From Paramicrosporidium saccamoebae KSL3 (taxonomy: Eukaryota > Fungi > Cryptomycota): 21,998 bases of DNA. The DNA is taken from positions 1 to 21,998 of the forward strand of contig MTSL01000211.1 in assembly GCA_002794465.1 (NCBI GenBank). Reading direction: 5' to 3'. Positions 2,601-18,329 of this stretch are shown here, in pieces. The position numbers were made by a program, and so were the translations under genes. The notes under the pieces are model-generated. The model was given only the letters and a program-made list of their open reading frames with translations, was not told the DNA's origin and searched no databases. Each line of letters starts with the position of its first letter. Within the stretch, counting starts at the first letter, position 1.

Positions 2601-5569
2601 TTAAAGCGATGCATTGGATTGGTGAAGGAGATTGGACAGTGCATTCTGCGTAGGCTGATCTAAAGAGGAGAGGAGAGAGGATAGTTTTCCAGGTTGTTGG
2701 GACCGCGAGAGAGCAACAAGAGAATTGATAAATACTGGGGCAGGCTCGGGGAGATTGTCCAGCATCGGACATCGACGCGACGAGGCTGCGACTTTGAGCT
2801 TCCAAAATGTGCCAGACGGCTCCTCCTCAGCTTCCGCCTCCGTGTTGACTTCTCCGAGGCCGCCAGCCGGAAGCGTCGTCAGCATTGTTACAACGGTGCT
2901 GATGATGGCCGTGAAGAGGGACGAACAATCTTGATCACCAGACATTAGCTCGGGTGTTTCAGTGGCAATTTTGGCAAGCCCGACTATAACCAATTTCCGA
3001 TCGTGTCTATCGCGAATCTTGGGGCCATTGGTAAGCAAAACCCCAGTCATCAGACCTGCCAGCAGCTTTGGCTGAAGAGAGTCAAAAAGTCTTACTAGAT
3101 ACGAGCTCGCTTGGTTGACGCTGGCCGCACAAACAAAGATGCATATGAACAGGAGGAAATTCAGTGCTAATCGGGGTGTCTTGCTGCTCTGGAGGCGATT
3201 CAGGATGACCATCAATATGCCGCTAATGTAGCTTTCCATATTGCTTATTGGAACGCTCTGAATCACTGTTCCGATAATAGAAAAGGCATGCACATCGTGC
3301 ACTTTGCTGGATATCAGTGACTGAAAAATGCCCAGCACCTGTGGCATCAAATTGTTTTGGACAATATAGTTGGGATCTCTAAGGATGACTGCCTGCAAAA
3401 ACCGCGTCAAAGCGGGGATATTCTCCGACGACGACCAGAGGGCAGGAAGGAGAACTGGAGGTACGAGTGCTTGCACGGTAGCGGGGAGACCAGAGTCAGC
3501 CCGCGACTCGACATACACTGCCAAGAGCTGAAAGACGTAATGAATGAATTCAGTGACATCGTTCTGCAAAATGTTTTGCAGTACGGGCAGCAGTTGGGCG
3601 TCAATCTTGGTAGCGCCCGTGGGGTCGCCACTACAATATTTAATGATCGCCGCAGCACATTCGAACAGATTGTGGTTGAATATGGGGTTGCTTGGGTTCA
3701 CTGAGACCAAGCCAATGAGCGATGCAACACTGCTGAGAGGCTCATCCATTATGGGCAATAGGACTTCCTTTTGGGCAGTAACCAGTGTCCGGAGCACAGC
3801 CTTGACAAGAAACTCGTTTTCCGACACTTTCTCGGCCTGTTTTTTGCTCCGAAGAATCCGTAGAATCCCAGTAATGATGGCATCGGCAACGCTGGCCACA
3901 TCCGCAGACGTAAACACTGGCCCACCTTGCTTCCGAAGTGACAAAATGCGATCAATGGCAATGGCAGCGTACGTGTGAACAACAAAATGATGCGACGCAA
4001 GATGATGCTGGATCAAGGGAAAGGAGGCGACTAGCTGCTCCTTATCCAACTGGCTTCTAAAGTCAGACAAAAACTTGATGGCGTCAATTTTCAACAGTGG
4101 GTGGAGTGCTGCGTTGGATGCTTGGAGATCAGGTAGAATGTGTCGTGTAAAAAAGTCTTGGATGTTTACCAATGGGTTCACACGGGTAACCCCAAGAGAC
4201 GAAACAGCTCCACGGATGGAAATTGCAGTGAAAAGATGGACTGCAGCATTCTTATCTCTCCATTTCTGCGCAGGCGAGATGGAGTAAATCTTTAAAAACT
4301 CTTCAACATAGCTTTGCAGGATGGCTGTAATTTCATTCTCGTAAAACTCCATCAGGCCGCGAGCCAAATTTATAGCGCCGCCTCGGCGACCTTCGTCCTC
4401 GGTGCCTCCGTCTATTGATCTTCGAATAAATTCCAAGGGTTCGTCCTCGAACAATTCCAAATCTGACTCGCGCAAAAGGATATTGGGCACAATGACCTTG
4501 TCGCAGAGCAACTGTAATACCCCAGAAAATAGGCTCTTGTGACGCTCCTGCTTGGCCACAGTGGACAACAGTCGCATACACGCACCGGCAGTGGCATCAT
4601 GCTTTGGTTGTCTAGAGACGGTAGTGAGGACACTCCATGCCGCTTCTACAAACTGTCCCAGCTGGGTAAAATCTTCCTCGTATCGCATGGCATACAAGAT
4701 GGCGATTTTGGCAACAGAAGCCGGCAATTTCTCTGCAGGCCCGGCCTCCTCCTCAGAGGTCGTTTCAACAATGGCATTTTTATAGGAAAGCTGGCGCTTT
4801 AAACTCTCCATAAATTCGCCAAGATTATCTTCAAAGAATGCAGGCAAGTCCTGGGCATTTAAACTGTAATAAATTTTGTTCAACAGTATCTGCGCCCTCA
4901 AAAGCTTTTGCAACGTCTCCTTATTGCTGGCATTCGATTCAACGAGCGCATCTAGGGCCTTGTACATTTCCAGTAATGGAGAGGCCAGCTGTCCGAGGAC
5001 AAAATTAATCTCCGTGTACAATTCGTCGCTTCGAAATTCGGTCCTGTACCTCTTGAACATTCGATGTAGCGTCTTCAAAATGGCAATATTATTGTCAAAA
5101 TCGGCGGGATTTAGTCGCTCCACCAGTCGCTGTATCAAGTCTGGCCACTCTTCAGGAAAGTCCACCGCCGCAATAAGTGTCACTGCCTCACAAAGCTGAT
5201 TCTGTATCACGGGTGGCACCTTGGTCAAAATACCGACAATTTGCTGCTTCACAGCCCTTCGGTCCTCATCCGTAAAACTGGGCAGTGGCGTCTCCAACGA
5301 CCAATGCCGCTTGACAAAGTTTTTAAAGAGCAGCGCGGCGGCCATACGTACGTGTACCTCTATGACGGCAAAACTTCCATCGGCTACTGAGAGGAGCAAG
5401 AGAGGAAAGTGTGGGGATGAGAGCTCCAGTTGCTTCAGCGTGTCCTCCGCTTGACGCTGCGCCAATGGATTAAGGGTCTGTGTCAGCAGAGTGACAACAT
5501 TCTGCAGCAATGACGAGTCTACAATCAATTGAGGCTAAAAGTAGGCGTACCAAAGGCAGACGAGGCCAT
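2601..5569 (-). CDS. CSE1: Exportin-2/CAS (importin-alpha re-exporter), 2 exons
   Basis: Importin-beta N-terminal domain (AAALLFKNFVKRHW), AVDFPEEWPDL, EINFVL, YYSLNAQDLPAFFEDN, DLELFEDEPLEFIRR, LKIDAIKF and FIHYVFQLLA motifs. Exon 1 is 5569-5551 (MASSAF-G), followed by a 32-nt intron 5550-5519 (gtacgc...ttgattgtag) that restores an ATG start in frame; exon 2 is 5518-2601. Confidence 0.95.
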
Positions 5570-6164: not shown

Positions 6165-7140
6165 CTATTTAAGTAGTTTTCCCATCAAAATGGAAACTAT
6201 TAGTAAGATAAGCGAAGCTCCGATGATCGCGATCAGTGAGTATTGGTGCAGCTTTGGTCCATAAACCGTCCTAGGTATTAGAAAAAGATTTAAGGATACT
6301 TGGCAATAGACTCTGATGCCTTGAATTTCAAAGATCCCACCGGATGTTTCCTCATTAACCTGGCTGTATGTAAGATTAGTGGTGAAGATCGTATTCTCTT
6401 CGGCAATTCTTTCAGTATCTGATGCATCTCTGCTTCTTCCACTGCCTGATCCAGCAACTCTCTCCTCGCAAGCATCGGCACTACGGCCGCTGCGTAAACA
6501 ATCGCCACTGGTTCATTTGCTATAAAGAAATCAAATAGTCTTCGGAGACCAGTGAGATCGGAAATGTCATGAGAGAACCAGGTGAGAAGCCAGCTTATAC
6601 AGAAAAATGGTGGGATGGAGAGACGGGAGAGGAGGCGGTGGAGGGGTGGGTCGGCGAGCTCTACAATGGCGAGCATCATTGAGACCAGGTCGTGAAGAAT
6701 GTCAAAGTCACTCTTCATCAAGTCTCTTAAGATGAATATGACCCAATACCATTATACCGAAAGTGAGTGCGAGACAACTTGGAGGCCACTCGAAATGAAT
6801 CGCTCTCATCCCTCAAAGTCAAAAGTAACACGCTGCAAATATCGTGGAACCCCTACAGTCAGTATCCTGCAGTCCGTACTTGGAAATAATGTAAATCTGG
6901 ATGCGCTGCAAAAAAGTGTGTAAGGAATTTTTCCATTTGCTTCTGTCTTGCCGCTAACTCCTCAGGTAGCGCGCTGTCAAACTGCGAAAAGGACCGAACC
7001 GAGTCTTGATGAATCTGATTGCGCAATTTTTCATCCAAATCACAATGCTCGACCTTGAAGTCGTCTAAACGAGTGTTTGCGAGCCATGCTGCCCGCCGTT
7101 CCTTTGCAGAATGATATTTTGGTATAATAGAGGCTGTCAT
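6165..7140 (-). CDS. GYP8: TBC-domain Rab GAP, TBC1D20/Gyp8 family, with C-terminal membrane anchor (295 aa), 4 exons
   Basis: Exons 7140-6880, 6852-6758, 6725-6300 and 6270-6165 (888 nt); introns of 27, 32 and 29 nt, all GTA...AG. Splicing yields QIHQDSVRSF (Arg finger), LHYFQGFHDIC (Gln finger), HFRDLM, FFCISWLLTWFSHD, RRLFDFF and a hydrophobic tail SLIAIIGASLILLIVSILMG. The start codon is less certain. Confidence 0.88.
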
Positions 7141-7433: not shown

Positions 7434-8680
7434 TCAGATCCTTTCGATATGAGTGATGCGAGTGGGGTTGACATGAACATAAAGTCTGACTCGTGTAAAC
7501 ATGAGTAGAGTGCGGGTCGCGTCAATTTGAGACTGATCAAGATCAATGTACGTCTCGGGAGGGAGCCCGAGGAAATCAGTGGCAAGGGGATCATTCAGAT
7601 ACAAGCCGCGAATAGTCCCAGTTTCGTCGGTCAATGCAAGGGGAAACCCAAAGCGAAGCTTCCATTTCGGTAATTCAGGGTTAAAAGTCTTACATACAGC
7701 GCAGGACCTGCTCCAACCTTCTTCAATGGCCTGTCTCTTGTGACACACGGGGCTAAATGTCAACAAAACGAACACGAGCCATACCAAACTGCGCTAATCA
7801 CTTTTGCAAGACCGACCCCAAGATGTGTTATATGTCCAATAACCTCCACAGTATCTTCACATCCATCGGGAACAGTTTCCATTTGAACAGTCGCGGATCG
7901 TATGTCTGTTGGTAACTCGCTGGAGACTTGCACTACTCCAGGTCCGTTGGACTCGATTTCTAGCAAAGTGTGTCGCTTCATAAATACATTGTACAAGTCT
8001 CCAAATCTCGATACTGCTCCCCCAGATAGGATCAGCACAGTATTTGTGCGAATCAAATCCAAATCTACTCTACCCCCATCCAACTTGAGCGTTGCATTTG
8101 ACCCTACAGAGTCTTGGCACAATAGCTGTAGGGTATCGTCGCGATCAGACTTTGTCATCCGACTTACTGTCAACTTTAGTCTCGGAAACGGAGACCTGAT
8201 GGAATCAAGTGGCTCAAAGGAGGGTCCCGCAATTTCCCACGGAAAGGTTACGATTCTGGCAATTTCGTCTAGCTCCCAAGTTCTGATGATCAAGTTCGAC
8301 CCAACAAGCACCTTTTGGAGACTGCATATCGTCTGGTTCACTTGAGGAGCAGTCTCCAACGGACGTATGTCAACCACCTCGATTGACACCAAGTCACCAA
8401 TCCTTGCCCCACATGTGGCTGGGACCACGCAAGCGACTGAATCGTGTTCATCCTTTAAATAGAGTGCCAATTTTGAACGAGTAGCTTCTGATAACCCGAT
8501 GATTCGTCCCAGTACCGTTCCAGAGCCACACTCAATCGCCCTTCTAAACGACAGATACTTGGCGAGACGTTGTCTCTTTGGTGATGACTCTGGAAACTCG
8601 TCAAGCTGCCATGCAGTCTCGGGCACTACTGCGCCAAAGTCTTCAAGATTCTTCCCAAAATCAGTGCTTAGCCAGCTCAT
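7434..8680 (-). CDS. MEIOB: Three-OB-fold ssDNA-binding protein with C-terminal Zn ribbon, RPA1 paralogue resembling MEIOB (404 aa), 2 exons
   Basis: Exons 8680-7785 and 7752-7434; a 32-nt intron 7784-7753 (gtatgg...ttgacatttag) creates AVCPVC...CAVC (two CxxC). The following LALTDETGTIRGLYLNDPLATDFLG...QIDATRTLLMFTRVRLY resembles the MEIOB C-terminal IDLTDHTGTL...AEETLG...QKTALKWQFLLERSKIY as I recall it. The N-terminal VLGRIIG...RIGDLVSIE resembles MEIOB OB1. OB/RPA1-like family assignment is firmer than the specific orthology. Confidence 0.62.
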
Positions 8681-8722
8681 CTGCAGCGAGCCTAATGCCA
8701 AAAGCTCTTAAATCGGCATTGC
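8681..8722. promoter_or_regulatory. Putative 42-bp bidirectional promoter between the MEIOB-like gene and LEO1
   Basis: Gap between ATG 8680 (-) and ATG 8723 (+); it would be 75 bp if LEO1 starts at the Met at 8756. Confidence 0.45.
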
Positions 8723-11905: not shown

Positions 11906-14900
11906 TTAAAAGGGTGCAAAGCCAAGTCGAGAACCCGATCTCGAGGTATCGCCTCTCGGATCAATCTTTTCTTGATACTCTCGAAGTGACTGACACATTA
12001 TTGGGATGGCAATGTCCATCCATCCGTTGCGCCAGGCACATTCAAGAACCACGTCGGGTACAATGGAATCGGCACAGGCATAGGCACAGCCGAGGAACAG
12101 CTGCACTAATCCCGCAGATCCCAAAAGTTTCAAGAGATCTTCGGCAACAGCCCGTTCTCGTGATTCGGCAGCCAGAGCAATGGCATCCTTAAACAGACCC
12201 TCCTTGACCAAGACTGCTACGGCCTCTTTCCACATCTTGTTCTGTCGATATAGATGGGCGCCGAGACGACGAAAGTCAATCAGCTCGTGTGTCTCGAGGC
12301 GATGAGCAAAGGCGGCGAGATCAAACTTGTCCGACTTGGCAATGGAAGTGCGCAATCCCTCAAGGTCCTCCTCGTCAAGCAGCAGCTCATTCAGGGCATT
12401 ATTCACGACCAAACTGTTGCCTGGCTGGACGGCCACCAGATAGCCCTTGATCAACGGCAGCAAATTTGACTGTCGGAAGAGTTCAACAATACGCGTTGGC
12501 TCCATGCGAGTACCCACCAGGATCAGTAGCTCATTAACTTGGAGCGGCGACTGCTCCAGGTAAAACTTTACGGCACGCAGAACCGTCTCGGGACTGGACA
12601 CTTTTTGGATCGCTCTGCACATGCGTTCGTGTTCCCAGGCATCGGGATGTTCAATCATAATAGAGACGGCTCTCTCATTCTCATCATGATGGATGAGGAG
12701 ATGGGCCATTTCTCCCCAAAAGTGTCCCTCTTGGCAGGCCAGGATTACTTTTTGCATATTCACCTTTCCACTGTACAGTTTTAGATATTCCAACAGTTTG
12801 GATGGCTTGTGGCGAGCATACTGCACCGCAAGCTCGGTAAAGATTCCTCCGTGGGCGCGCTCCAAGCCAAGACTGCTTTCCAACAGACTCATGCATTGCT
12901 CATGCATCCCTCGGCTTTCATAACTGTACACAATATTATCCAGTTCATCCGGATGAACGACAAGGTAAAGTCCACAGACTTGCGCCAAATGGTATTCCCC
13001 CGTTTCTAAACATGCCTGGTTAACATCGGCCCATACACGAAGACTATTAGCTCGCTTTGCGCACTCTACGGCACTGTTGTAATCATGAAGGTGCACCAAC
13101 GTCGTGGCTAATCTGGCGTAATTGGAGATTGATGAATAAAAGATTTTGGCAGATTCAAACAATTTTGCCTGGTAACAGCGGTCTGCAACCATCTGAATCT
13201 GGGCACCATGAGGCCTCTGCATAAACTCTTCAATGTCGGCAATCCGGTTGAGGCTGGCCAAGCAAAACAACAGCTCATTCTCCAGGGCGGAATCGCGAGT
13301 CTTGCGACGTGCCATTTGTAGATAGCGCAGCAAGTCATCAAAGTGACGACCAGAAGAGGCCGCTTTGATAATCTCGACATAGTCGGTGCAATCGTCTGCG
13401 CGAATGTAAGCGTCAATGGCCTGTGATATCCGTCCCCCAGCGCAGAGGCCACGTCCCAGCTTACTCCAGACTTCCTTGTCATTGCAATCTTCCGCAAATC
13501 CAAGCGCACGATCAAAGTCTTTGATAAATTCCACAAGAATAGTCACTGCCATTGCCAAATTACCCCCCTTCTTGTATCCAAATAGTGCTTCCTCAAAGAG
13601 ACCAGCCTGCGTGCAGGTCTTTGCGATTTCAGATCCATCAAAGTTGGTCAATTTTTTCATGTGGTCCATGACACTATCGGGTCTCGTCTTGATGGCGGTC
13701 AAAAGGAGCAGATTTTGCAGATTCTTGTTGCTCGAAAACGAGGTTCCTCCATACAAAAGCTTCTCCAAGACGGCAAGCAGCTCCTTTGCCAAATCCGCCC
13801 CAATCAAGGCTTTCACTGCGATTGATACATCATCGGCGTCTTGACTTTCCAACACGGCCGAGTTGATGACCTGATCGAGGAGTTCGTCACGGTGAGCATT
13901 GCTCTTGTCCAGGACCATTCTCCACAAATTCATGTCACGACGCTTCAACAAGTACTTGGCCTGCTCCTTGAACATGGCCGACTCGTTGGTCATAGTGATG
14001 AGCTCTTTGTCAAGCTTTCCCTTTTCATAGGCAATCAGAGCAAGATGAGGCTCGCGTTTTTCGCAAAACTTGCCAACGGCAGCGGGACTGTACAAATTGT
14101 TTTCGGTCAAGAATTCCGCAGCGTTCTGCTTCGTGACAATGTAAATCTTGGCCAGAGCATTGTAGACGGCAACATCTCGAGTATTTTCCTGACGAATCTT
14201 TTGCTCCAAAAAGGGAAGAAGAACTGGGAGCTGATCTCTCTCTTCAAGCACCTTTACAAGATTTTCAAGGGGGAAGCGGGGTGGCACCGATGACAGCAGA
14301 GATTGCATTGTGGCAGAATCGCATCCACAGTCAAATAGTGCAGCGACAACGTCGGGGGTGCGTGAAGGATTGACTTTTTGCACATAGACCTCAATGTACT
14401 TTGGCATGTTCTGTTGGAAGAGGTGCACAACAAGATCGTGTACAAGATTGAATCGGTCTGCAACAATGACAAGGGGGAGCTGATCGGGAAGTCCTTGTTC
14501 CTCTTTCAAAAAGGTCCACACCGTCTCAGGATCATAACTGCTACTCTCCTTGCAGACCTTTTCCAGCTCTTTATAATGGCCGGTGCGGGCGGCAGATTTG
14601 ATATAGGCAAAATGCACTTTGGCGTCTTTGCAGGTGGCAAGGAGGGCGCCTGTAAAGACAAAGAGTCCGTCATAATTTCCAGCATCTTCAAATATCTCCA
14701 TTAAAAAGGCTGGCGACACTTTGCTGGCCAGCTTCACGCCCGTAGTAATCACGAGCTGGACAAATTTGGCGGGATCCTGGGCCATCAAAGTCCTAAGGAT
14801 GGTGACAATGTCTTCAGTGGCAAAGTTTTGCAAATATGAGACGGTCCAATCTATGTTAATTTCCGAGGGCGCGTTCAACAGGACGCGGGTCACATCACTG

Positions 14901-16861
14901 GTATTTCGATAATGCTCCAAAGCCTAATTGTCAGAAATCACACACGGGTACTCTTTGATATAGACCAGAATTTTCACAAAGGTTGGCAATCTCGTCACGA
15001 TCATATTTGTTGAGCATCTTGGCCTGGAAAATGGCATCGGCAACTTGGGGTGCCTGTTGAATGCTGAAACGCAAGACTTTGGTCTGTAGACTGGCCAAAT
15101 CATCGGTATTCTGTTTCAGACGATCCAGGACGGAACTTGTCGCCTGCTGCACAAGACCGTGGCCAACAAATAGATCAAAGACCATTTCAACGTTCACAGC
15201 CAAAGAAGCATCCTCAAGAATCAACTTTCCAAACTCTACTGCCTTTACAGGATCAGCCGCCATCGCAGCTTCAAGGAGCGATGGATAGTCGGGCTGGATG
15301 CCAACCTTTTTGGCAAAGAGGACCAGTTTGGAGAATTGTCCGAGCTCTGCAAAACACTGACACACCTTTTCCGGAACATCGGCGCGCAGATAAATGGACA
15401 ATGCCAAAGTCGTGTCAAAGGGCTTGACAATGTCTCCGAGCTCTTCACTACACTCCAACTTGTTCTCCTTTAGCCACTTTTCCAAAAGAGCCTTTTTGTT
15501 CTGGCTGAGCACCGGTTTGGCAAGCTCAATGGACTCGTGGTGGTTCAGAGATCCCTTTTCAAGCAAAATACTGAAGTATTGCAGCAGCGGTGATGATTGT
15601 CCAGGCGAGACGGCCACTGATTTCAAAGTTTCAATGGTCTGGGGAGTGCGAAGCATCCCCCGTGGTGAGCGAGCGGCGAGCTTTCCTGCTTCGACAAAGT
15701 CGCCCATGTTAATTAGCTGAGTAAATCGGTTGGCAAAGAGCTCATCGGCGCCAGGAAGATCATTGTTATACGCCATACGAATGGCCAGGTCTGGCTGATT
15801 GTTTTGTAAGAGATATGGAACAATGGTCTCGCCATCAATCATCACTGACAGCACTTGTCCGCGGCGGTTCACACCAATCACTCCCGAATTATTGCGCCAC
15901 TCGGTGGTAACAAATACTGTCTCGCTGGAAATCCGATTGGCAAAGATGCAAGCCCCCGTGATGAGATCGAAAATCTGGATGAATCCAAATTTGGTCACCA
16001 CATAGACTACGTCAAATTTGGTTCCAATCTGCATAGAGACGGGGAAATCGCTTGCAGCCTCGGGAGGAAAGGATATGTCTAGTGCTTTTTTGGAAAAAAC
16101 TGGATTTCCTTCGCGATGATCAATCTCAACAAGATGGAGCTTGGCCGCAGTCTGAGTACGCACGGCAAACACAAATAGCTTTGTTGGGTATTGCGCACCC
16201 TCCAACATGACTTCAGCAAATCCTCCAGTGTGTCCCTCGATGGCCTGACTTACTCCACGATCCATATTATACAGCTGCATGGCTCCGACTACGCGCCCAT
16301 GCTGCGCAATAATACCAACCAACAGCAGCCAGCGTCCGGTGCTGTCTGTACGATAGCTAATAATTTGACATCCTGCCAAACTAGTGTGTCTTTCAAATAC
16401 CTTACGCGGGTCATTTCCACCCTCGAGGTCCCAATGGTACACGCACGTCTCTGACACGAGTCCAATGGTCGACGGGCCCAGCCAGCGCCAGAAGAGCACC
16501 TCTTCCGTCATCACATACGACTTTAGCTTTGCCTTTTTCTCCAGGTCGAATATCTGCACCTGGCGTCCGGCCTTGAGTGCGATTACTTTGCTGTCTGGAT
16601 TCATAATGGCCGAGTCGGCGGTAATGGGTCGGCGCATGACATTCTCTGGGTCATTCAAGTCAATAACGACGACCTGGTTCTGTTCAGCAACCTTTTCGCG
16701 AACACAAATGAAGCGGTCCGATTCGAATGTGAGCGTGTTGAAGCCTATACTAGCCGCATTGATACCAAGGGCTTGCAGCTACAGAATTACAACATGGCTG
16801 GTGAGGTTACCTGCAAGTGCTCCTGGAATTTGATGGGCAGCAACTCGTTCAAAGAGTCCAT
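11906..16861 (-). CDS. CHC1: Clathrin heavy chain (1631 aa), 3 exons
   Basis: Exons 16861-16811 (MDSLNELLPIKFQEHLQ), 16778-14952 and 14923-11906; introns of 32 nt (16810-16779) and 28 nt (14951-14924). Splicing gives LQALGINAASIGFNTLTFESDRFICVREK, RRPITADSAIMNP, GLYQR|ALEHY, YIEVYVQKVNPSRTP and ERAHGGIFTELA. Confidence 0.98.
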
Positions 16862-17270: not shown

Positions 17271-18329
17271 CAAAGTCTATTTCGACCATGTCACTGTCAA
17301 TTTCTACCACGGTGGCGTGTTCCATCTCACTAGCAGGAGCCTTGATGCTAAAAAGCTGATCTCCATAGGCCGTCTTGATTTGGACAATTTCTTCGGTCCA
17401 TTTTGCGAGAATATCGGCGTCTGATATCACAAACCCAGCAACAAGACATGGATCGATAGAGTAAAAGGCGACCCGTCCCAAATCTGCACAGCTATACGTA
17501 CTCAGATCCTGCAGGTCAATAGTAACGCTTTTCCAGATACCTCTGACGAAACATTTTCTCGTGGGGCCGGTCTGGGATAATGGGGATCCAAGTATAGCAA
17601 GTCGTTGTTTTCAAATCCAACAAAGTATAAAGCACTGTTTGGCCGCCCTCTAACGGTCAAAGATGTCAAGGTAACTGTACCCAGCAATGCCTACAGTGTA
17701 TCGATTCGTCAGCAACGCCTATTAGTATTAAAAACCCCACCGCCCCACATCTGGTACCTTAATGGGCCCAATGTAGACATCGTTTAGAGAATCCACTCCA
17801 AGCCTCATTGGAATCCAGACAAGCACCTTGGCTCCTCCAAGTAATTCGCCAATTTTCTCAAGGTCAATGGTCATATCGACAGCGCAGTATGACCGCAGTC
17901 CAACATTGAGATTTTCATTGATCAGGCCACTAAGACAGCGCGATGTGACTGAGGGCGCGTGCCACTCGCCAATGCGTCGTCCCATGGACGCTCCCGCCGA
18001 AGCAATATTATGCAACGACAGAGGTGCACTCGGCGAATCCTTGAACAAATCCACCACAAATCGTCTTACACTCTCATCCTGTTCAGCCAGCAGCCAGCCT
18101 AATGTCAGGACACTGTGTAATGTCTACCATCTCCAAAGATGGTTGCCAAGACTGCCGTGGCCGCTAACATCTGACCACATCTAATCATGCAACCCCACCC
18201 TGCGTCTGCTGTAAACGCCGTTCCTGGTATCATATCAAAGTCATAACGATAGGTAATCCAAAAAAACGCTGCTGCGATGCTTGTTGAGAGGGTAGCATCC
18301 GCTTCAGCGTCGCATCCGATTATCCTCAT
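17260..18329 (-). CDS. ATG4: Autophagy cysteine protease Atg4 (312 aa), 5 exons
   Basis: Exons 18329-18128, 18098-17758, 17718-17681, 17649-17541 and 17508-17260 (939 nt); introns of 29, 39, 31 and 32 nt. Motifs are WITYR, DAGWGCMIRCGQM (catalytic Cys), IGEWHAPS, VGIAGGRPNSALYFVG, LYLDPH (Asp/His) and IDPCLVAGF, with a C-terminal DFEPI LIR-like motif. Confidence 0.95.

Follow-up and report, generated by a model that had tools for sequence, protein, structure and literature searches.

The window analysed here is a stretch of 21,998 nucleotides (nt) from the cryptomycotan fungus Paramicrosporidium saccamoebae KSL3, a parasite of amoebae (contig MTSL01000211.1, positions 1 to 21,998), and its minus strand carries, between positions 8680 and 7434, a gene that encodes, with a probability of about 0.8, a highly divergent homologue of MEIOB, a meiosis-specific paralogue of the DNA-binding protein RPA1 without its RPA70N domain. 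Judging from comparison with relatives, the locus is a real, selectively maintained gene of two exons, and the family to which its product belongs is related to MEIOB specifically rather than to RPA1. At 98% identity, the spliced protein corresponds to "hypothetical protein PSACC_03524" of the same species in NCBI, for which the public gene model predicts a different intron. Pfam gives no match and the annotation reads "hypothetical protein"; the identity of the protein is visible only by profile-profile comparison.

When the single protein was used as the query at E-values up to 10, Pfam and a phmmer search of PDB sequences each returned zero matches. Pfam scans of 18 family members gave nothing relevant, and no further homologues came from a word-indexed search with the family alignment. 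When 1.84 billion representative proteins were scanned exhaustively with phmmer, 20 matches were returned, 17 of which are true relatives, all of them unnamed metagenome or Logan fragments from uncultured samples. The other three (P0006, P0013, and P0018; E 1e-6 to 1e-25) were rejected as relatives: they are repeat proteins, consisting of a 14-fold unit, a 17-fold unit and an array of 17 repeats, in which about 5 bits for each of many near-identical copies have been summed.

Is this family related to MEIOB or to RPA1? Reference sequences of MEIOB, MEIOB-like proteins and RPA1 were taken from the supplement of an earlier study (Ribeiro et al., 2015; PMC4830875) and compared with the family using hhalign. 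The family matches the profile of all MEIOB with a probability of 98.5% (E 1.8e-15, score 122) over 356 collinear columns (51-409 vs 64-501), that of metazoan, Capsaspora and hold'em MEIOB with 98.3% (E 2.3e-14, score 112, 197 columns) and that of the fungal MEIOB-like proteins with 96.3% (E 1.9e-9, score 77, 335 columns), as against 17% for RPA1 (E 1.4e-3, score 36, 175 columns). A second profile comparison gave 98.6% for MEIOB (E 9.8e-16) and 3.1% for RPA1 (E 0.014). Reversed, column-shuffled and block-shuffled family alignments, which served as controls, score 10-25 as compared with the real 122, and even the P. saccamoebae sequence alone matches MEIOB with an E-value of 6e-13. In all five full-length family members, MEIOB hidden Markov models (HMMs) score 27-45 bits and the RPA1 HMM 0.5 bits or less. 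This asymmetry favours MEIOB, because RPA1 evolves slowly and, were a lineage as close to the one as to the other, its match to RPA1 should be at least as good.

Most of this signal resides in the third OB fold. The segment with OB3 (residues 270-404) taken by itself scores 107-109 against MEIOB (E 7e-16 to about 1e-15) and 37 against RPA1 (E 2e-4). Residues 322-404, from which the zinc ribbon is excluded, still match MEIOB with an E-value of 8e-11 and give nothing sensible against RPA1; the signal survives removal of the ribbon, and thus the match does not depend on the cysteines. The four cysteines align with C345, C348, C362, and C365 of human MEIOB, and hhalign pairs LTDETGT of the family with LTDHTGT of the human protein, FLGLPPETY with TLGCTVHEF and DQSQIDATRTLLMFTRVRLY with TDEQKTALKWQFLLERSKIY. 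D341 corresponds to D383 of mouse MEIOB, which is critical for SPATA22 binding (PMC7523692), and family members with this region retain it. A first-pass annotation of the window, made from the letters alone, had named six blocks of human MEIOB as resembling this protein. NP_001157032 contains all six, with their order unchanged. The significant similarity is almost entirely in OB3; the three N-terminal blocks are collinear with MEIOB in the full-length alignment but are not significant alone.

The same annotation had considered that the protein might instead cluster with RPA1 or with POT1 and CTC1. In a neighbour-joining tree of 400 columns, all RPA1 sequences stand apart from the family and MEIOB in 60 of 60 bootstraps. 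When a family profile that included the C-terminal columns was run against all PDB chain sequences at E-values up to 10, only Rfa1 and Ustilago RPA70 were found, the match to DBD-C of yeast Rfa1 (6i52_C) having an E-value of 3e-4, and none of POT1, CTC1, Teb1, TEBP-alpha, and RADX was matched. An earlier family profile (A1), from which the C-terminal columns had been lost, gave only chance matches in PDB.

The architecture of the protein has been deduced from two sources: OB1 and OB2 are seen in a structure model, and OB3 is recognised from its profile match to OB3 of MEIOB. Together these give three OB folds without an RPA70N domain, and the 44 residues preceding OB1 are too short for such a domain, so the MEIOB-like arrangement that had been proposed at the outset is borne out. 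The AlphaFold2 model was built from an alignment of 18 sequences with the mis-spliced public protein of 395 residues (P0001) as the query, which lacks nine residues of the zinc ribbon. OB1 and OB2 were modelled with predicted local distance difference test scores (pLDDT) of 75-94, and a prediction from the single sequence was uninformative (pLDDT 33). The zinc ribbon is predicted from a four-cysteine motif, CPVC (299-302)-X13-CAVC (316-319), the cysteines of which are kept by every relative with the C-terminal part, and the protein terminates at its last beta-strand without a C-terminal helix. In a Foldseek search of a PDB structure library, the top matches of the model are RPA70 chains (9pd4_N, E 1e-11; 4gop_C, comprising RPA70 A-B-C, E 1e-10), and DBD-A/B of RPA70 (1jmc_A) matches with an E-value of 2e-7; this library holds no MEIOB chain, and the fold search therefore cannot separate MEIOB from RPA1. 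The RPA70 chains are followed by other tandem-OB proteins, namely Oxytricha TEBP-alpha, RADX, HIN-200, CST-POT1/TPP1, and Teb1, and the resemblance to telomere proteins and RADX is a generic likeness of the tandem-OB fold.

Several observations weigh against the assignment to MEIOB. OB1 and OB2 alone score only 15-28 against MEIOB, which is the level of the controls. The tryptophans that are invariant in MEIOB (W68, W211, and W222 of the human protein) are not conserved in the family: the position of W68 lies within a deletion, by which the helix between strands 3 and 4 of OB1 is lost as well, that of W211 is an Asp in OB2, and the hhalign alignment shows no aromatic residue at either of these two positions. 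We take human W68 and W211 to be the equivalents of the residues of RPA70 that stack on single-stranded DNA (ssDNA). The OB3 part of the AlphaFold2 model is of low confidence, the alignment being shallow there. The spacer of the zinc ribbon is X13, as in RPA1, and not the X10 of MEIOB (CX2C-X10-CX2C; PMC4830875). MEIOB has a predicted C-terminal helix, which is absent from the family; in human MEIOB this helix is dispensable for SPATA22 binding (bioRxiv 10.1101/358242). Of the 60 bootstraps of the neighbour-joining tree, 29 leave the family outside all MEIOB, 22 group it with the fungal MEIOB-like proteins and 6 group it with holozoan MEIOB. Such a tree, in which three groups are long-branched, cannot prove orthology, and the asymmetry of the profile scores is the stronger argument. 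We know of no SPATA22 partner outside animals. SPATA22 has been described as vertebrate-specific, at least in the statement cited in PMC4830875.

The basal position in this tree would fit a lineage-specific RPA1/MEIOB paralogue, sister to MEIOB and not its orthologue, which an intranuclear parasite has repurposed for a task outside meiosis, for example in a complex for telomere ends, replication stress or repair. We regard this explanation as unlikely. The failure to recognise OB1 and OB2 by sequence, the loss of the invariant MEIOB tryptophans and of the C-terminal helix, and the presence of an N-terminal motif specific to the family are all as expected of such a protein, as is the small number of relatives, only 17 among 1.84 billion representatives and all from uncultured samples; in addition, Oxytricha TEBP-alpha, CST, and RADX are on the Foldseek list. 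However, the score against MEIOB exceeds that against RPA1 by a factor of about three to four, with similarity reaching past the zinc ribbon, no sequence match to a telomere OB protein was obtained, a MEIOB would be in keeping with the full meiotic toolkit of the species, and long-branch effects can account for the basal position in the tree.

A related possibility, to which we likewise give little weight, is that the family is a third, previously unrecognised branch of RPA1/MEIOB in which OB3 alone is recognisable, acting not as an ssDNA binder but as an adaptor that docks either to RPA or to a novel OB-fold partner, without SPATA22. In such a branch, OB1 and OB2 would have lost their conserved tryptophans, and a conserved N-terminal peptide of Trp and acidic residues would have been gained. 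A protein of this branch could have a role outside meiosis in the intranuclear parasite. Comparison of the N-terminal tail with the N-terminal extensions of the fungal MEIOB-like proteins gave an E-value of 0.035 over 13 columns, and the two are not detectably related.

If the protein is a MEIOB homologue, as we favour, its role can be outlined by analogy with animal MEIOB as follows: initially, it would join RPA at resected meiotic double-strand breaks, where OB3 would provide a platform pairing with an OB-fold partner resembling RPA2 or SPATA22, and then it would help to process recombination intermediates after strand invasion. Its ssDNA binding may be weaker than that of MEIOB, or dependent on a partner, because the tryptophans invariant in MEIOB are missing from its OB1 and OB2.

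The coding sequence of this protein is interrupted. Two open reading frames (ORFs) lie on the minus strand at the locus, one of 313 residues (7760..8701) and the other of 117 residues (7434..7787), and they overlap at GTATGGCTCGTGTTCGTTTTGTTGACATTTAG. Removal of 32 nt (7784..7753) joins TG to C, which creates the codon of Cys299 at a predicted exon junction of GCAGTTTG and CCCCGTGTG, and yields a coding sequence of 1215 nt (8680..7785 + 7752..7434) for 404 residues with its ATG at 8680. The start Met is shared by 10 relatives in the alignments, together with the motif M-x-W-[LI]-x-x-D-[FL]. A sequence resembling a branch site, TTGAC, is found 7 nt before the AG of the 32-nt intron. The motif match is by itself not beyond chance, as one match was found and 0.75 would be expected from shuffled sequences; the intron is accepted because comparative evidence, rather than the motif match, decides the matter.

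The closest relative, a metagenome sequence with 76% protein identity (L001), can be aligned gap-free along 1171 nt, and its intron, likewise of 32 nt (GTATAA...CTGACATTTAG), occupies the identical place; after splicing, L001 reads CPECHKRQAVEEGWSRSCAVC and thus encodes CPEC...CAVC. In comparison with this relative, exon 1 has 151 identical, 73 synonymous and 51 non-synonymous codons, the 27 nt following the acceptor have 3-4, 4, and 1-2, respectively, and the rest of exon 2 (94 codons compared) has 57, 21, and 16. The ratio of non-synonymous to synonymous substitution rates (dN/dS) is 0.17 over 377 codons. More distant relatives have introns of other lengths at the same phase-2 position in the same Cys codon: 38 nt in L003/L004 (37% identity), 51 nt in L002 (26%) and 31 nt in L006 (28%), and splicing yields CxxC...CxxC in each of them. 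Many exon-1 ORFs in the databases terminate in "...W-Y...", which is the signature of read-through across TG followed by GTAT. In two other relatives, P0005/L007 (VICFACQKR, with CFAC) and P0011 (ATCPKCHRK, with CPKC), the motif is contiguous without any intron. The pair of L007, in which TG is followed directly by TTTTGCATGT, and L004, in which gtat...atag intervenes between TG and CTTTGCATGT, shows a clean presence and absence of an intron at the predicted junction. From these comparisons, the 32-nt intron is real. What the first-pass annotation had proposed for this locus, namely two minus-strand ORFs, the splice of TG to C, a product of 404 residues and the CPVC...CAVC motif, has been confirmed by the coordinates and by the introns of the relatives.

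L007 was also considered as a spliced cDNA, which was rejected, as it carries intergenic sequence and part of a neighbouring gene. When L007 (1-809; ENA ERZ1079237) is set beside L004 (4974-6611), 649 nt of exon 1 are missing from it, without GT...AG at the borders, so that residue 17 is followed immediately by the end of OB2; the downstream spacer is much shorter. An assembly artefact, a deletion allele and an unusual transcript are all conceivable explanations for the deletion. The protein of L002 diverges at its C-terminal end (about 1136-1500), after "...FLGVDVSIPQYY", and reaches an early stop, which may reflect a second intron or a frameshift. The end of the L001 contig (1340-1422) is a long (GATA)n microsatellite. 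Two GT...AG candidates within exon 1 of the P. saccamoebae gene (8629..8590 and 8251..8196) were rejected, as both consist of sequence conserved codon by codon, the removal of which breaks the frame.

The public model excises 59 nt instead of 32 nt. Comparison of the two products, of 395 and 404 residues, reveals that the 59-nt intron costs the protein nine residues, V-CPVCHKRQ, and with them the first zinc knuckle. This intron is in the deposited annotation, has GT...AG ends and keeps the frame, and the same GT and AG are present in L001. Yet the 27 nt that it removes in addition are those in which four of the five codons changed with respect to L001, out of seven that the public model leaves out, are synonymous (CAC/CAT, AAG/AAA, AGA/CGC; GCC/GCG just beyond), and this synonymous bias indicates that the segment is coding. 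All relatives, the intron-less L007 and P0011 among them, conserve the CxxC that it would delete, and the zinc ribbon would be left with only two ligands. Moreover, TTGAC precedes the AG of the 32-nt intron as it does in the validated intron of the clathrin gene described below. The public 59-nt intron is thus probably wrong, and a protein spliced in that way, without its first knuckle, is very improbable.

The knuckle restored by the 32-nt splice is CX2C, and not the CX4C of RPA1 (PMC4830875). That the protein is nothing but a canonical, fast-evolving large subunit of RPA1 that has lost its N-terminal domain can hardly be maintained: its best fold matches are to RPA70, the family profile weakly matches DBD-C of Rfa1 and the X13 spacer is as in RPA1, but the hhalign probability is 3-17%, the RPA1 HMM scores 0.5 bits or less in every family member, so that the signature of RPA1, a highly conserved protein with 73 invariant columns in an alignment of seven species, is absent as a whole, and a core gene such as RPA1 would be expected elsewhere in the assembly, the quality of which has been described as high with reference to CEGMA (PMC5701793).

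Table 1. Features of the MEIOB-like gene and its product, and other candidate introns in the window.
Feature	Position	Strand	Description
Exon 1	7785..8680	-	896 nt; residues 1-298 and the first two bases (TG) of Cys299; from the ORF list and translation
Intron	7753..7784	-	32 nt, phase 2; GTATGG...TTGACATTTAG; whole segment GTATGGCTCGTGTTCGTTTTGTTGACATTTAG
Exon 2	7434..7752	-	319 nt; third base of Cys299 to Ile404; stop TGA 7436..7434
N-terminal tail, residues 1-44	8549..8680	-	Family-specific; M-x-W-[LI]-x-x-D-F, W and acidic residues, basic KRxR patch; pLDDT about 40
OB1, residues 45-132	8285..8548	-	Five-stranded barrel without helix between strands 3 and 4; pLDDT 75-94
OB2, residues 168-243	7952..8179	-	AlphaFold2 pLDDT 81-94; Foldseek 1jmc_A, 4gop_C
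OB3, residues 276-404	7437..7855 (spans intron)	-	MEIOB-like C-terminal OB; LTDETG motif; helix-turn-helix at about 358-385
Predicted zinc ribbon, C299-x2-C302-x13-C316-x2-C319	7692..7786	-	Intron inside the C299 codon
Intron of the public model (probably wrong)	7731..7789	-	59 nt; GTTTGG...GACAG between GCA and GCC; 395-residue product (P0001)
Further candidate ultra-short introns	5519-5550, 6271-6299, 6853-6879, 17509-17540	-	27-45 nt; GTA...YTRAY...YAG
Further candidate ultra-short introns	17650-17694, 17719-17757, 18099-18127	-	27-45 nt; GTA...YTRAY...YAG

The basic KRxR patch in the N-terminal tail could be a nuclear localisation signal. The gene for Leo1 is oriented divergently on the plus strand, and its ATG (8723) is separated by only 42 nt from the ATG at 8680, which makes further 5′ exons unlikely. 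The head-to-head gap between the two start codons (8681-8722) implies a very compact bidirectional promoter; the arrangement is kept in the distant relative L003/L004, where the gap is 61 nt. The neighbours in the window are all housekeeping genes: those for an XPG-like nuclease, Cse1, a TBC RabGAP, Leo1, RRN3, and clathrin heavy chain, as well as a class I aminoacyl-tRNA synthetase (Trp/Tyr type) and a DDHD lipase. The order of clathrin, RRN3, Leo1, the MEIOB-like gene, TBC, and Cse1 is kept in a relative with only 37% identity.

An intron as short as 32 nt is not isolated in this genome. The gene for clathrin heavy chain is split into two ORFs (14931..16658 and 11906..14920) by a 28-nt intron on the minus strand (14951..14924; GTACCC...CTGACAATTAG), the removal of which restores GLYQR joined to ALEHY, and the resulting peptide aligns without a gap to residues 567-672 of clathrin heavy chain (E 2e-22). 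A YTGAC branch site just before the AG is common to this intron and that of the MEIOB-like gene. To judge from these two cases, very short introns with YTGAC next to the acceptor are normal in the P. saccamoebae genome. The further candidates in Table 1 sit near Cse1, near the TBC gene and in an ORF-poor stretch at 16.8-18.5 kb. This suggests several further multi-exon genes in the window, the public models of which may need the same check. Correction of the public model restores half a zinc ribbon, and real introns of 28-32 nt with a branch site adjacent to the acceptor matter for re-annotation.

To our knowledge, sex has never been observed in Rozellomycota. With the present gene, the meiotic genes of this lineage, one of the first to diverge among fungi and close to Microsporidia, would include a factor of the MEIOB type. 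The P. saccamoebae genome has been found to contain all meiosis-specific core genes, among them Spo11, Dmc1, Hop2, Mnd1, Msh4/5, and Rec8, and the organism is probably diploid, from which cryptic sex has been inferred (Quandt et al., 2017; PMC5701793). MEIOB-like genes have been described in Mortierella, Neurospora, Coniosporium, and Pneumocystis, and an origin in opisthokonts has been proposed (Ribeiro et al., 2015; PMC4830875); the present finding supports this earlier proposal that MEIOB arose before the split of animals and fungi. Cryptic meiosis and deep retention of MEIOB, which had been raised when the gene was first noticed, are consistent with the evidence but are not new, as both are found in these papers (PMC4830875, PMC5701793). 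No paper connecting MEIOB to rozellids or microsporidia came up in a literature search. The gain is incremental, consisting of a divergent new member of the MEIOB family and the correction of a public gene model, and not of a new kind of system.

How does this family compare with known systems? The tandem OB arrangement of RPA1/RPA70 is the best structural match, and OB3 is weakly similar to DBD-C. However, RPA1 has the RPA70N domain, a CX4C-X13-CX2C ribbon and a C-terminal trimerisation helix, whereas the family has a CX2C first knuckle and lacks both RPA70N and the helix. The fungal MEIOB-like proteins of Mortierella verticillata, Coniosporium apollinis, Pneumocystis murina, and Neurospora crassa are Holomycotan paralogues of RPA1 that combine the MEIOB architecture with an N-terminal extension (PMC4830875); the family matches them more weakly than it matches animal MEIOB, and their function is likewise uncharacterised. 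MEIOB itself, as known from animals, Capsaspora and Drosophila (hold'em), is only about 17-19% identical to the family, the OB1 and OB2 of which are not recognisable by sequence; its OB1 has a helix and loop bearing W68 that are without counterpart in the family, and the motif of the 44-residue tail is the family's own. Nevertheless, MEIOB likewise consists of three OB folds without RPA70N, in about 470 residues as compared with 404, and the CX2C first knuckle and the LTDxTGT motif with the Asp equivalent to D383 are common to both.

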